DNA of 63,298 bases, the filler included, from Reticulomyxa filosa (Eukaryota > Protista > Foraminifera): assembly GCA_000512085.1 (NCBI GenBank). It is 19 parts of 19 records of this genome, joined end to end, with 100 filler letters (N's around TTAATTAATTAA, not from the genome) between each part and the next. Parts side by side here need not be neighbours in the genome. Positions count along the whole stretch, not along the records: positions 23,935 to 39,591 come from ASPP01023936.1; 18 more parts are not named here. One strand, given 5' to 3'. Position 1 is the first letter of the stretch. The number at the start of each line of letters is the position of its first letter. The position numbers were made by a program, and so were the translations under genes. The notes below the pieces were generated by a model. That model made no database searches, was not told the origin of the DNA, and saw nothing but the letters and a program-made list of their open reading frames with translations. Shown piece after piece: positions 29,340-37,714 of this stretch.

Positions 29340-31566
29340 ATGCAAGTTCTGTTGACGACATGTTTAATCCATTTAAAAACGAAGAAATTAAATCCGAATC
29401 TCTTAGGAGTTACAAAAGATTCAGATGTATATGAAAAAAGGGGAGACTTGGGGTTGAGAATTCGAGACCTTTTGGAAAATGTCGAAACAAGCATCAAAAA
29501 AAAAAATAATGTAAAAACATGTGAAGTTTGTATCATAGGTGGTGGTATCTCTGGTTTGACAGCGGCCGAACATTTGTCAAAATCAGGAAAATTGAAGAAC
29601 GTGGTGCTGTTAGAGGCGAACCGACGTTTAGGTGGCAGGGTCCGTGGTGAGAGATTAAAAGTATATGATGATATGAACGATTTGTCGAAAGTGAGCCATG
29701 TAATGGTGGACGTTGGTGCTTCATGGTTACATGGTTTGAATCAAGAGTCCAATGACACTTTCATTCATTTCTTACAAAAGAGCGGGATAGATTTTTCTCA
29801 AACCCAAATGACATTTTACCCTTGGCCAGTGACATTGTTTTCTCCAGACGAGCAAATGCCTTGCGACTACCAGCCATCGAACGAAAGCATGGTGGTACAC
29901 TCAAAGACGATACACCCGTTGCTGTTCAATTCGAAAAGTGCCACCACGTTCCGTCCGAGTGGGTTGTACATTAGTCCATCTTATGGTAAGGCATACGATC
30001 GCGTGCATATTTTCCACGACAAAAACCCCGTCGCAAACTCGGCTAATTTGAATCCTATTGACTTTGTCCGCAAAGCTAAACGACACTATTTTGACACTGT
30101 GTATTCGCCCGTCACCGTCAATTCGAAAGATTCTACACCAAAGCAAGGTACCCCTTTTTTCCCCTCACCTCCCTCCCAAAAAAATTTTTTTTTTTTTTTG
30201 CACCCCCCCCCTCCTGTTCGCGGTGATGCGAAAGTAATAAAAAAATAAATAAAAAAAAAAAAAAGAAGTGCAAAGAAGAAAAGGAAAAAGAAAAAGAAAA
30301 AGAAAAAGAAAAAGAAAAAGAAGAATGGAAATTGGATGTGTCAAAGTTGCCGGAGAGCACGGTAAGTTATGAGACGTGGCTACATTCGGAAATGAGGAAA
30401 GTGGAACCGAATGTGAAGGAGGAGTATGCGAAGCTGTGCGTGCTGTGCGAAGATGTGGTTCGTTGCAAGGAAGAAGGAGGAGATATTGACAAATGTTCGA
30501 TTCGCGACACATGTTTGTGTGACGAGCACTGGGATTACGGTTCTCATTTTTGTAATCTAGTCGGGCAATTCAGCAAAACGATTACCTTTTTGGAATCCCA
30601 AATTGCAAAGACAAACCAACAACAGCAACAGCAACATAAAATTGCTGACGAAGCAAAAATTCATGGTACCGAAATTCAATTGAATTCCAAAGTCTGTTGC
30701 ATTGACTATTCGTTTGAAAAAGAGAAAGACTGGATTGTAATTACATACAAAAAAGAAGGGAAGAAAAAAAAAAACAAAGCGTCACAAATGACGTTGCATT
30801 GTAAATATGTGATCATTACAGTCCCTTTGCCGATCTTGCAAAATGCCACCAAGTTTCGGTTTGTTCCGGAATTGAGCGTCCAAAAACGCAATGCCATCAA
30901 TCGCCTGTGGGTTTGCAAAGCTTGCAAACTGTTTGTACAAATCGTTTCGTCCAAAAAAGATGATTTGTGGCCGTTTGATGGCAAGACAAAAGTGGTCCAT
31001 TTGCGCTCGGTCATTCACCCCGATGACTTTACCACTGTTGCCGGACACACGATGCCGACCATTAGTGAAATGGAGTTTTTATTATGTCCGAGGATCCAAA
31101 CTTTGGAAAAACAGGACGACAAAACGTCGTCCAATCCATGCGTGGTGTTGATGTGTTGCTTCATTGGCACGCATGCCTTACAATCCATTGATTTTGTTGC
31201 CAAATTTGGTCAATCCAAACTGGCCGAACAAGTTGTCGCTTTTGTTCGTCAAATGTATGGAGTTGATCATATCTCCACCGGCAACTACATGTTTTGGAAT
31301 TGGGACTCTGTCGACTCCGTACAATGTGGATATCACGCACCGGTCTCATTTACTGTCGAGTCGGCTCATGAATTGCAATCTCCTATCTTGGATCGCATCT
31401 TCTTTGCTGGAGAACATACGGTATTCTTAATGTTGTTTTTTTTTTGAAAGGTCTAATGTCAAACTTACTGCTTAAATACATAAAGGTGGAGTCTTTTCCT
31501 GCTGTGCAAGAAACAATGAAAACTGGACGAAAAGCTGCGGAGCAATTACTCCATATCGTGGGTTAA
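29340..31566 (+). CDS. Flavin-containing amine oxidase (PAO/MAO/LSD1 catalytic-domain family), multi-exon
   Basis: IIGGGISGLTAA, LLEANRRLGGRV, VDVGASWLHG, VIITVPL, IFFAGEHT and last exon TGRKAAEQL. Start position uncertain. Confidence 0.92.
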
Positions 31567-32641: not shown

Positions 32642-35600
32642 ATGAGTTTTGCTGGTCGTGGACCAAGAGGTCGAGGCCGAGGACAAGGCCGAGGACAAGG
32701 AAGAGGACAAGGAAGAGGACGAGGACGAGGGGGTGATACAGGCAGAGGTGGAGGCCAAGGAAGAGGAAGAGGAAGGGGAAGAGGACGAGGAAGAGGCCGT
32801 GGTGAAAGTGCAAGAAGAGCCCAGCACAGATTTCACGACAAAGCAAGCCAAGCGTTAATGCAAGAAGTTGAAAAATTAAACCCAGATGTACCTGGAGTTC
32901 GTCCAGTCAAGTGTTGGATATTCGACAATGTTGAGTAAAGAAAAAAAATGCAAAACAGTACCTTAATTTTTTTTTTTTTTTAAATCTCGACCGACTCAGT
33001 CCTTTGAAATTTTATACGTAGACCCCATGGGTAAAAGCAGAGTCATTAACAAAAGAATCATTTTATTACTACAACCGCGAAACAAACACAAGAAATGACA
33101 CCATTCCATCAGAATTAAATGGAAAGACAGGACAACTGTGTTACGAAGAGCACAGAGCAAAATTTGAAGAGCGCCCATCTCGTTTTGGAGAGGAAAGGAT
33201 GAAACGAATACAGAATGTTGTAACAAATTCCTTCATCGTGACGGGAGAAATGCTCACTATCCCAATTGCACATTATTTGGTGACATTTGATCCAGACATT
33301 GACCCAAGGGATTTGGCCTTGAGGCAACAAATTGTTATTGGGACAGATAGGTTTGCTGAAAACACTTTTTTTTTTTTTTTTTTTGTGCATACGTACACTT
33401 TATACGCACACTCAAAAAAAAAAAAAAAGGAAAAGTCAAATGAAGAACGATAAAATTTTAAGAGATGCTTTTGATAAGTATGTATTTGATAATCACGCAT
33501 TATACGCTTTTGGCAAAAAGTCATACCCTCCAAAAGTACAATTAGATTTGTCACCACGAAGTTTTGCCTTTTTTTTTGTTTCTTTTTTTTTTTTTTTACG
33601 AGAGGTACAAGCTGGAGTGAAAAAATAAAATGTACAGACAAAGTTACATTTGTATGGTACGATTCATTGTACATTAATTCCCCGGAAATGACAACAGATC
33701 AGCAACAGGCATTGCTGAATATTTTTAATCGACGAATCATGCAGGAGTGTGGCCTGACGAGGATTTCAAGGGGATGGTTTTTGGGAAGACAGAGCGCAGA
33801 CCTGTCGAGCATGAAACCAATCGATGTTGATGGTTGTCGAGTATTACAAGGCTTTGAGGTAATGTTTTCCAAAAAAAACTGTCACTCTATCTCTTCCAAA
33901 TTTTTTTATCTTGTCTTATCTTACTTTTTTTTTTTTTTTTTTTTTTGTTGTGTGACAAAGTGCTCCGTGCAAGTATTGTCCACATCAACGAAAGCACCAC
34001 AAAGTGCAGTCTTTAAAGCTGATACAATATCCAAGTTAGTGTCTCGTGACACCGTTCATGACATGATTGAAAATGAATTTAATCAGTTTAATTTTAATTC
34101 ATCGGACGTTCAAGAGAGAATCAGAAAAAAGCTTAAGGACCGCTATTTCTGCGTAACGTATAGTAGACAAACGCAGTTAATTGACGACATTGATTTTTCA
34201 CAAACTGAAAACTCAACTTTTCAACTTAAAGTTAAGTTAACACCAAAACAAAGATTTTTTTTTTTTTTTTACATTTAAAGACAGTTCTACCAATGTTACG
34301 TATTGCATGAACAGACTGGCGATAAAATTAGTTACGCTAAATATTTGGAAAATGCGTACAGAATTGCAAGCCCACAGAAAGAGAAATTTGTCATCAAAGA
34401 TAACAAGGGTATGCGTTTGTTTGGTATTTTTACATTTTTTCCCTTTTTTTTTTTTCCTCTCATTTATGCATCACAAGATTTTTTTCAAAAAAAAAAAAAA
34501 TAAAATAGGCAGATGTTTTTTACCCCAGCATGTGCAACTGACATTGAAGTCAGACGATGTGGAAGACTATACACAAATATTGGAAAAAACCACGGCCCCA
34601 ATCCAAGACCGCCTTCATCGCATTGACGGATTGGTGGAGGTAATGCGCAAAACGGGTGAACGAATTGCCAGTAAAAGCAAAAAAAGGACCGAACCAGAGA
34701 TCCAAGAAAAAGAAGAAAAAAAAGAAGTAGCTGTCATGGAAACTTTTCCATTCAAAATTGATCCCAGGCCTATCCGGGTAAATGCAGTGCAATTGCAGTA
34801 CCCAAATATAATTTATATGACCAAAGATTACGATGACCCAATCAAAACAAGCGTAACAAATATTCAGTGGGGAAGAAGCGGGGGAGGCTACATTGGGGGT
34901 ATGGTGCCGTTAAGAAACTGGGCGATTGTGGTGAACAGCAAGGACAATTACGCAGACAACCAAATTGCAAACATTGAACGAGGATGGAATTCGTTTGTTG
35001 CGTCACGTGGTTTGCCAGAAAGTTCAGTGGCGAACCCCAGCGTTCTGCGTATCGATTTTGGTAACATTGACGGCTATCGTGCCATCCTTCAAAAAGCATA
35101 TCAACTGGTAATACTGGCATTGCCAGAAAAAGAAATTGGGTCGCAATACAAGTCACAATTTACTCGAATTTTGCAGTCGGACAAAGCAAGTAACAAAGCT
35201 TGTCTAATTCAATGTTTGTTGGGAAGAAACGCAAGTGATCCAAATGTTATTAAAGGAAGCTTCGATGCCATAATGGCAAAGATTGGAAATGTGCTTTTCC
35301 AAATTGATCCAAACCTCCCTAATGGGTCAAAGGTGATCAATATGAACAAAACATGGTGTGTAGGAATGGAGTTATCACACAGAGCAGAAAAACCTAGTGC
35401 AATTATACTCGCACTAAGTACGGCCCCATTAGAGGGAAGCCTTAGATCGTGGCACTTTACAACGCATTTAAATCCATCAAGAAAAGATGTAATTACATTA
35501 GAAGCTGCATCAACTTTGATGTTTGACGCATTAAAAATGGCCGTTGAAAATGTCGGATCAAGAAATTTACCAGAAAATATTATTTTTTTGCGAGGGGGGA

Positions 35601-36315
35601 TGCCAGATAATCGATTACACGAGCTTTATTCCAAAGAAGTGGTAGGGGTTGCAAGAGGGATCAACCGATTTAAAGGCCTTTTCGAAAAAACAGACGAAAA
35701 CGTTAAAAAATGGAAATGTAAGCTTACCTATGTGGTAAGATGCAAAAATGTCTTAGACCGATTCGGACAACTGCAAGAAGGGGGAAGAGTTGGCCCAATT
35801 GAATCACCTGCCGTCATTTTCGACGGAGTAACATCAGAAAGGTATGTTGTGATACAGCAACATAAACAAAAAAAAAAAGTTACTAACAATATACACAGAT
35901 TTTGGGATTTTTACGTTTGGCCGTATCATTTAAAAAAAGAAGAGTCAAAAACTAGACCATCTCGTTACGTGGTGCTAAGAGATGATATTGGTTTGGCCAA
36001 GAAAGGAGGAACATTTGATTTGTTCCAATTGATTTATTCGCTGTCTTACACATATGTGTTCTCAATCCCATTCCCACGTTATAGTTTTTTTTTGTACAGT
36101 GGTTTGCCCTTTTTTTTTTTAGAAAGTGTTGTTTGAAAACAGTGGGCCCAACAGCATCACCCGGACCATTGCAATATGCAAAGCATTACGCGGAAAGGTT
36201 TTCGCAAATGATTTTCAAGGCAGATAAGTCAATCGACATGTTAAAGCGAAGCAATAAGTTAATCAACCAACCGCAAGTCTCGGTGCCTGTGCAAGATAAC
36301 GAAACTACAAATTAA
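32642..36315 (+). CDS. piwi: PIWI-clade Argonaute, predicted non-slicer, with RG/RGG tail and WW-like domain; 9 exons (approx. 32642-32929, 33022-33350, 33430-~33535, ~33603-33858, 33961-34230, 34315-34408, 34509-35841, 35899-36077, 36143-36315)
   Basis: N: RPSRFG..VVTNSF..HYLVTFDP, YVFDNHALY. L1: LLNIFNRRIM..LTRISRGWF, VLQGF. PAZ: SKLVSRDTV, VTYSRQTQLIDDIDF..NSTF, ISYAKY. MID: NWAIV, LVILAL..QY, IQC, AKIG. PIWI: CVGMELSH, IIFLRGGM, WDFY, TRPSRYVVLRDD, LIYSLSYTY, SPGPLQYAKHYA. The exon 3/4 junction phase is unresolved. Confidence 0.93.
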
Positions 36316-36535: not shown

Positions 36536-37714
36536 TTATGTAGCAACATATTCAGTAGCCTCATTTTCGTGCTGAGAAAAAACATACTTTTCCATTTTGT
36601 CACGAACAGTGGGCTCACCTTGAGCATCAACATTGCCAGAAGGAAACAAGGGTTTAGTTTCTTCGGCAGATTTGTTGTACTTTGTCTTTGGTTTTATTCG
36701 CGCTTCTTCATATTTAAGTAGCAAAAGCTCTTTTTCATTGTCAATATCAATGCCACAGTCACAAAGTTTGGGAATGCAGCAAAAGGCGCCAGTTTTTTCC
36801 ATGTAGTCAATATACTCTTGGCCAAACTGATGGACGAGCAATCGTTCCTCCTGTCGTATTCGCGAGCTGGCAACCGCGACATTGAATACCAAGCAAAGGA
36901 ACACCAGCCAGCTGCCGGTGCAAAGAAAAAATCCCACACTAAATAATGTCAATACAGTATACGTTGGATGTCTGGCGAATCGATAAGGTCCATTCTTTAC
37001 CAATTGGTGGTTTTCTACTCGACATATAAGCATTGTCCACATTTTACCTTTTCTCCCCCCCCCCCGTCACCATTACCATTATCATGTTATGTCATTGAAA
37101 CATTATCGTAGATTCAATTACAAAGACAATATATACGTATGTATTTGTACATAATAATATATAACATAAGTCATTTTTGTAATGTCGCTCTGGAAGCTAA
37201 TATATAAACCTTGAACATACCTAATGTCGACAAAACCCAACACATTAGAATATCTGCAATAAACAGCATTATCAAACCGATAAGTCGTATCACGTTGGGA
37301 ATGCCTATTGTTAGTTGGTCCGGAAAGAACAATGCCAATATTATTGATACGCCAATTGCCACAAACGAAATTCGTAACATTATTGGTCGGTTGTCGATCT
37401 GTGCTTCATTTTTGTCAAACGATTTTGAGTGTATGTTTTATCACTACTTTTTTTTCAAAAGTTAAACGTATCACACACTCAATACCATTCGTCTTTTTTC
37501 TTCAACCAAAAAAAAAACAAAAACAAAAAACATGGGATATCAAAAACGGGATACAAAAACGGGATATCAAAACTTGTTCTATGACAATTTGCCTCTCTGA
37601 ACCGCACGAACGTTTATACAAGAAATACACAAGGATGAGTATCATTAACCAAGCCAGAGCTTCTCCTGAAATCTCAACAATCTCAACAAAGCTTGGACCA
37701 CTCATGATCGATAA
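36536..37714 (-). CDS. Isoprenylcysteine carboxyl methyltransferase (ICMT/PEMT-like) membrane protein, multi-exon
   Basis: HQLVKNGPYRFARHPTY and RIRQEERLLVHQFGQEYIDY; upstream exons are hydrophobic. Confidence 0.88.

Follow-up and report, generated by a model that had tools for sequence, protein, structure and literature searches.

To reach their effectors, Argonaute and PIWI proteins usually rely on contacts of the GW/Trp-pocket type or on methyl-arginine/Tudor contacts. Animal PIWIs (MIWI, MILI, Siwi, Drosophila Piwi and EfPiwi) have an N-PAZ-MID-PIWI core together with an RG-rich N-terminal tail. The WW domains of Prp40, PRPF40A (FBP11) and TCERG1 (CA150/FBP28) occur in tandem, in proteins that also contain FF domains, while the group IV WW domain of Pin1 binds pSer/pThr-Pro; we take Arg17 in loop 1 of Pin1 to be the phosphate binder and Trp34 to be the ligand Trp. 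Our full-text literature searches found no account of a WW-PIWI or WW-Argonaute fusion, nor of the PIWIs of Reticulomyxa, and to our knowledge RNAi in the supergroup Rhizaria is almost unstudied. The initial annotation of the locus described here stated that no WW-PIWI fusion was known. That holds for the literature searched but not for databases, where the precomputed Pfam annotation of one relative already reads WW, PAZ and Piwi. The architecture is visible in databases, yet undescribed in the literature found.

The window analyzed here is a stretch of 63,298 nucleotides of Reticulomyxa filosa DNA, composed of 19 joined parts. One part, a 15,657-bp contig, carries the PIWI gene RFI_27655, so that the host had rightly been named a rhizarian protist. 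An ORF of 609 amino acids at 34307-36133 is 100% identical to RFI_27655, and all exons of the gene given below are on the + strand. Its neighbors are ordinary: upstream lies a two-exon flavin amine oxidase gene (29340-31447, + strand) and downstream a fragment of an isoprenylcysteine carboxyl methyltransferase gene (36536-37042, minus strand).

By translation, exon 1 (32642-32929; 96 codons) begins at the ATG at 32642, and its tail aligns to paralogs and relatives. It encodes RG/RGG repeats (approximately 32654-32803), within which a 6-nt DNA repeat extends from 32667 to 32796, and then a predicted helical segment, RFHDKAS...LN...VKCWIFDN (32828-32929). Intron 1 (32930-33021; 92 nt, phase 0) has the donor GTTGAG and the acceptor TACGTAG. 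The TAG at 33019-33021 both closes the downstream PIWI frame and supplies the AG acceptor (33020-33021); from 33022 the PIWI frame is open as far as 33453, and a mechanically called ORF begins only at the ATG at 33199, 59 codons further on. Exon 2 (33022-33350) ends in phase 2 before GTTTGC, at a donor position common to a paralog contig (L002), and encodes a WW-derived fold and, after a linker, the beginning of the Argonaute N domain. It reads T-P-W ... Y-Y-Y-N ... D-T-I-P. The WW-derived domain, supported by Pfam WW, AlphaFold2, Foldseek and PDB profile searches, comprises 27 residues (33028-33108) bounded by the first Trp and the closing Pro, with the first Trp at 33028-33030, an Asp in place of the second Trp at 33097-33099 and the Pro at 33106-33108. 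The acceptor, the 59 open codons above the ORF start and the peptide quoted in the initial annotation are all confirmed in the sequence, and so is its gapless Pin1-type alignment of the 27 residues from Trp to Pro, with Asp in place of the second Trp.

Is this segment part of the mature protein? The junction 32929|33022 joins exon 1 to exon 2 in phase 0, as had been proposed from the donor at 32930, and paralogs bear this out. On the paralog contig L004 (RFI_09739), exons and intron are laid out as in the window gene, the intron position and the phase of the donor agree, and the acceptor is identical (TACGTAG followed by ACCCCATGG); the exon there begins T-P-W-I-K. On L002, upstream of RFI_10474, the intron has the same position and phase, and the exon starts S-D-W-E-K. 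A third paralog, RFI_12797 (L005), has no intron at this place: a single ORF spans RGG repeats, helix and WW-like segment and continues into the N domain. The spacing across the predicted junction, W-I-F-D-N-T-P-W, equals that of the uninterrupted L005 ORF and of intron-free metatranscriptome ORFs. Over the first 32 codons of exon 2, comparison with L004 gives pS 0.63, pN 0.185 and omega 0.15, and over the whole of exon 2 omega is 0.07, values that come from paralogs saturated at silent sites. Because of the uninterrupted paralog ORF, the shared junction, the intron-free relatives and the low omega, sequence comparison shows 33028-33108 to be, as read here, a translated, selected and constitutive part of the PIWI gene.

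Several features of the gene models and introns were observed along the way. The public model of RFI_27655 (34352-36312) starts inside the gene, loses exons 1-5 and reads through a poly-T intron, which makes it unreliable. That of RFI_09739 (L004 4001-5338) uses another acceptor, so that the WW-like fold loses its first Trp. On L002 (529-534; ASPP01007722.1) exon 2 loses its frame at an A-run that has slipped by one base; the copy on L006 (ASPP01031731.1, same assembly) is intact, and the difference is probably an assembly error, or else marks an allelic or duplicate copy. Introns at the PIWI locus have long T or A runs on their flanks. The element GAC(C/T)GACTCAGTC is kept in intron 1 (32930-33021) and in the L004 intron, 25-45 nt upstream of the acceptor, and is possibly a branch site.

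How similar is the segment to known WW domains? The 39 amino acid piece from the window scores 12.6 bits (E-value 0.14) against Pfam WW, far under the gathering threshold of 26.9 bits, and the whole 110 amino acid exon 2 gives no Pfam domain match. Sub-threshold Pfam WW matches occur in several family members, with 17 and 20 bits in paralogs and 26.2 bits in the best relative, P0005. A phmmer search of the PDB with the 39 amino acid piece returns only four matches, all of them WW domains and none significant. At the level of profiles, similarity to solved WW domains is significant: a profile built from four Reticulomyxa copies, all without the second Trp, matches Prp40 (1.9e-7) and PRPF40A (2e-6) in the PDB as well as TCERG1, Pin1 and PCIF1, with WW domains making up 45 of its 46 matches, and a 19-sequence family profile reaches PRPF40A at 1.5e-12. 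When the N-terminal profile is run against 1.8 billion representatives, many multi-WW proteins are found besides the true relatives.

Structure prediction points the same way. For the 39-residue segment aligned with 19 relatives, AlphaFold2 predicts strands at residues 3-7, 14-18 and 23-25 (33028-33042, 33061-33075 and 33088-33096) with a pLDDT of 84-86, and the same three strands are predicted on the whole of exon 2. In a Foldseek search of the PDB, the best 50 matches are all WW domains (TM 0.48-0.73; rmsd 0.7-1.7 Å for matches of approximately 30 columns). With so short a domain their E-values are no better than 0.09-1, and we therefore rely on the uniformity of the WW matches and on the sequence profiles. 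The segment would thus form a three-stranded antiparallel sheet of approximately 30 residues, and it has W3, Y15-Y17, N18 and P29 (numbered along exon 2), with a span of approximately 26 residues from Trp to Pro; the second ligand Trp, expected 20-23 residues past the first, is Asp in the window copy. Taken together, profile searches and predicted models show 33028-33108 as encoding a small three-stranded fold that descends from a WW domain. The three-stranded WW fold for which the initial annotation looked to AlphaFold is predicted, at a pLDDT of about 85, for the 39 amino acid segment modeled by itself.

The segment is not peculiar to one gene. About 20 proteins have a common N-terminal plan of RGG repeats, a helical R-F-H-D-K-A-S ... 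L-N segment and the WW-like fold, whose family consensus is W-x-K-[IV]-[EQ]-S-L-S-x-G-x-x-Y-[YF]-[YF]-N, followed by a variable third strand and P-x-E. Approximately 20 residues past the fold, an F-x-x-P/R-P motif and a V-x-T-N-x-Y strand open the Argonaute core, and the full-length members contain PAZ and Piwi domains. The family comes from at least four Reticulomyxa paralogs, from the fragmented assembly GCA_024449935.1 and from intron-free JGI, MERC and Logan contigs (including run ERR1719206), contigs that we take to be Tara Oceans and culture metatranscriptomes. In GCA_024449935.1 (L010 1488-1660) the RGG-helix-WW-like module has an intron inside strand 1, so that intron positions within the module are not conserved. 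On two of the JGI contigs (L007 145-3900 and L008 71-3778) the JGI gene call misses the true start of the ORF, which lies further upstream; the upstream "genes" called there are RGG repeats read in the wrong frame, and a CCHC zinc knuckle, above the Pfam threshold at 30.8 and 35.8 bits, lies in the RGG tail of each of the two relatives.

In an alignment of 19 members, no sequence departs from S8 or Y15, and conservation of W3, L9 and P29 is 90% or more. The pattern of Trp, Tyr and Pro that the initial annotation expected in orthologs is accordingly conserved among the relatives that carry the segment (W3, Y15 and P29 at least 90% conserved in 19 members). Loop 1 carries a family-specific E-S-L-S-x-G motif, and the conserved columns cover the fold-keeping buckle, the second-strand Tyr and the unusual loop 1. 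The third strand is hypervariable, and many relatives have insertions of 3-6 residues in it. At the site of the second Trp, a Trp is found only in the marine clade P0005-P0007 and a Phe in several members of both subclades; the site is lost in the remaining members, often with 3-6 extra residues, and the Reticulomyxa copies have Asp (window) or Ser, Lys or Glu (paralogs). As read from these sequences, RGG repeats, helix, WW-derived fold and N-PAZ-MID-PIWI core make up a conserved architecture, and this N-terminal plan defines a PIWI subfamily.

Compared with the WW domains of Prp40, PRPF40A and TCERG1, which are its best profile and structure matches, the window segment has the same three-stranded fold, the G-x-YYYN-x-x-T core and the P-x-E-L tail. 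It differs in a loop 1 that is one residue longer, as in Pin1, and that has the family-specific E-S-L-S/T motif, in the absence of the second Trp, and in being a single WW-like copy fused to an Argonaute. With Pin1 it aligns without gaps at identical Trp-to-Pro spacing, and the two have in common the loop-1 Ser, the Y-Y-F/Y-N strand and T-N. The loop thus has the length found in group IV, but the position of Arg17 is Leu (at least 90% conserved in the family) and that of Trp34 is Asp in the window copy. Given these two replacements, phosphopeptide binding by the window copy is not expected.

The remainder of the gene encodes a PIWI-clade Argonaute with both PAZ and Piwi. The core starts in exon 2 (33163-33350) with an F-x-x-R-P motif and the strand region VVTNSF...G..L, which include the invariant columns R51, P52 and V66-N69. 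Exon 3 (33430-33560, 3' end approximate; N domain) follows an AG at 33428-33429 and was found by tblastn with P0011 and P0009; exon 4 (33605-33858, 5' end approximate; N/L1), found by tblastn with P0011, P0003 and P0018, has a GT donor at 33859. The middle exons with PAZ (33958-34420) were located with Pfam PAZ and tblastn, and their limits and an inner intron near 34235-34300 are approximate. A large exon (34508-36082), assigned by Pfam Piwi and by identity to RFI_27655, encodes L2, MID and the Piwi domain, and the last exon (36136-36315), found by tblastn of P0001, ends with a TAA stop at 36313-36315. Window exons were searched and folded singly, or by way of natural relatives, so that PAZ and Piwi were scored on separate exons: PAZ on 33958-34275 is a partial, single-exon match (23.6 bits, E-value 5.5e-5; 34.5 bits in the paralog P0003), and Piwi, with 33.6 bits, clears its cutoff of 28.9.

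The sequence is very divergent from the animal PIWIs, from which the window protein also differs in the additional helix and WW-derived module (and its relatives in the CCHC knuckle); it resembles them in the core and the RG-rich tail. A phmmer search of the PDB with the 609 amino acid PIWI exon gives no match, and a family profile was therefore needed for the comparison of clades. This profile scores 1e-46 to 1e-37 against PIWI structures (MIWI, EfPiwi, Siwi, MILI) and approximately 1e-26 against human AGO1-4, which places the family nearer to PIWI than to AGO proteins. In a quick tree with a midpoint root the family is separate from an outgroup of one animal Piwi and three AGO proteins; these outgroup members group together, and the tree is accordingly no test of PIWI versus AGO clade. 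An ESM Atlas search gives generic ArgoN clusters only.

At the first three positions of the D-E-D-H slicer tetrad, the window protein has Glu (35369-35371), Asp (35486-35488) and Gly (35594-35596) in place of the Asp, Glu and Asp of the animal PIWIs. The other Reticulomyxa paralogs have the same replacements, and the marine relatives keep D-E-D. The residues at these positions suggest that the window PIWI is probably slicer-dead and, like Drosophila Piwi, probably not slicing-dependent. Since the Reticulomyxa paralogs have lost three slicer residues, their silencing would probably depend on binding and recruitment and not on cutting.

What might the WW-derived module do in such a protein? The explanation that we favor, and regard as probable, is that it is a selected WW-derived fold that has lost the canonical groove and is put to non-canonical use, for docking or as a structural element, in a recruiting PIWI. 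In the ancestor, a functional WW adaptor for proline ligands would have tied the PIWI to a partner protein, a suggestion in which the ancestral aromatic residue is read from the quick midpoint-rooted tree. In Reticulomyxa the fold would have been retained and the canonical X-Pro groove lost, and the module would most likely act through the conserved face formed by strand 1, loop 1 and strand 2. For the RG tail beside it, the analogy with animal PIWIs suggests recruitment of Tudor-type partners. A predicted complex of the WW segment with the rest of the relative P0005 has a score of 0.00 and gives no evidence either way.

The initial annotation went further, suggesting co-transcriptional silencing in which a functional WW domain of the Pin1 type delivers the PIWI, loaded with its guide, either to phosphorylated Pol II CTD or to an effector rich in proline. 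Its proposed RGG-WW-PIWI fusion stands in so far as a WW-derived fold does lie between the RG exon and the PIWI core, but the canonical ligand Trp has been lost. The Pin1 length of loop 1 and the gapless alignment are what a Pin1-type domain would show; the best profile matches of the segment, Prp40, PRPF40A and TCERG1, act with the transcription and splicing machinery, a slicer-dead PIWI would need a route of recruitment, and a canonical WW persists in the marine clade P0005-P0007. Against this, the window copy has Asp at the site of the second Trp and the paralogs have Ser, Lys or Glu there, Leu stands almost without exception where Pin1 has its loop-1 Arg, and the hypervariable third strand takes up the insertions of 3-6 residues noted above. 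Because the phosphate-binding Arg and the ligand Trp of Pin1 are both absent, the idea of a CTD-bound guide carrier is unsupported for the window protein, and we hold it to be distinctly improbable. A related scenario, which we rate only slightly higher and still as doubtful, divides the roles: the canonical module of the marine clade would bind a proline-rich nuclear partner (Pol II CTD or a Prp40/TCERG1-type ligand), and the Reticulomyxa copies would have been re-tuned to a new ligand through the loop-1 face. If this were true, the module would be an effector-recruitment handle of a rhizarian PIWI subfamily, coupling small-RNA guides to transcription or splicing. The CTD route is a possible speculation, and it is most plausible for the canonical marine clade.

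A relic is a somewhat better candidate, although we still think it unlikely: the Reticulomyxa fold would then only keep the RG tail and the core apart and would itself bind nothing. One and the same lineage has lost both the ligand Trp and the slicer residues, and the third strand varies across the family, both of which fit decay. However, paralogs with saturated silent sites give an omega of 0.15, approximately 19 sequences show little or no change at S8, L9 and Y15, and the segment is kept in four of four Reticulomyxa paralogs. By far the least probable reading, to which we give hardly any weight, is that the resemblance arose by chance or that the segment is intronic or skipped, as in the alternative 32935-33093 isoform envisaged in the initial annotation, which would leave the mature protein without a WW-like part. 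The NCBI models of RFI_27655 and RFI_09739 do lack the first Trp, but the former is the model that reads through an obvious poly-T intron. An uninterrupted ORF in the intron-free paralog spans the segment, all the metatranscriptome relatives include it in intron-free ORFs, it is under purifying selection, and its profile matches to WW domains are significant. On these grounds both chance similarity and the alternative isoform were rejected.

The explanation that we favor, a WW-derived fold kept for non-canonical docking or structure, is one of function; the present evidence is a domain-architecture finding, not a mechanism. It corrects two public gene models in which the N-terminal third of the proteins had been cut off. 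A peptide-recognition fold built into a PIWI would add a third kind of wiring to small-RNA pathways, beside the GW/Trp-pocket and methyl-arginine/Tudor contacts, and the family, with its canonical Trp, Phe and lost states, is a natural series for probing the function of the module.
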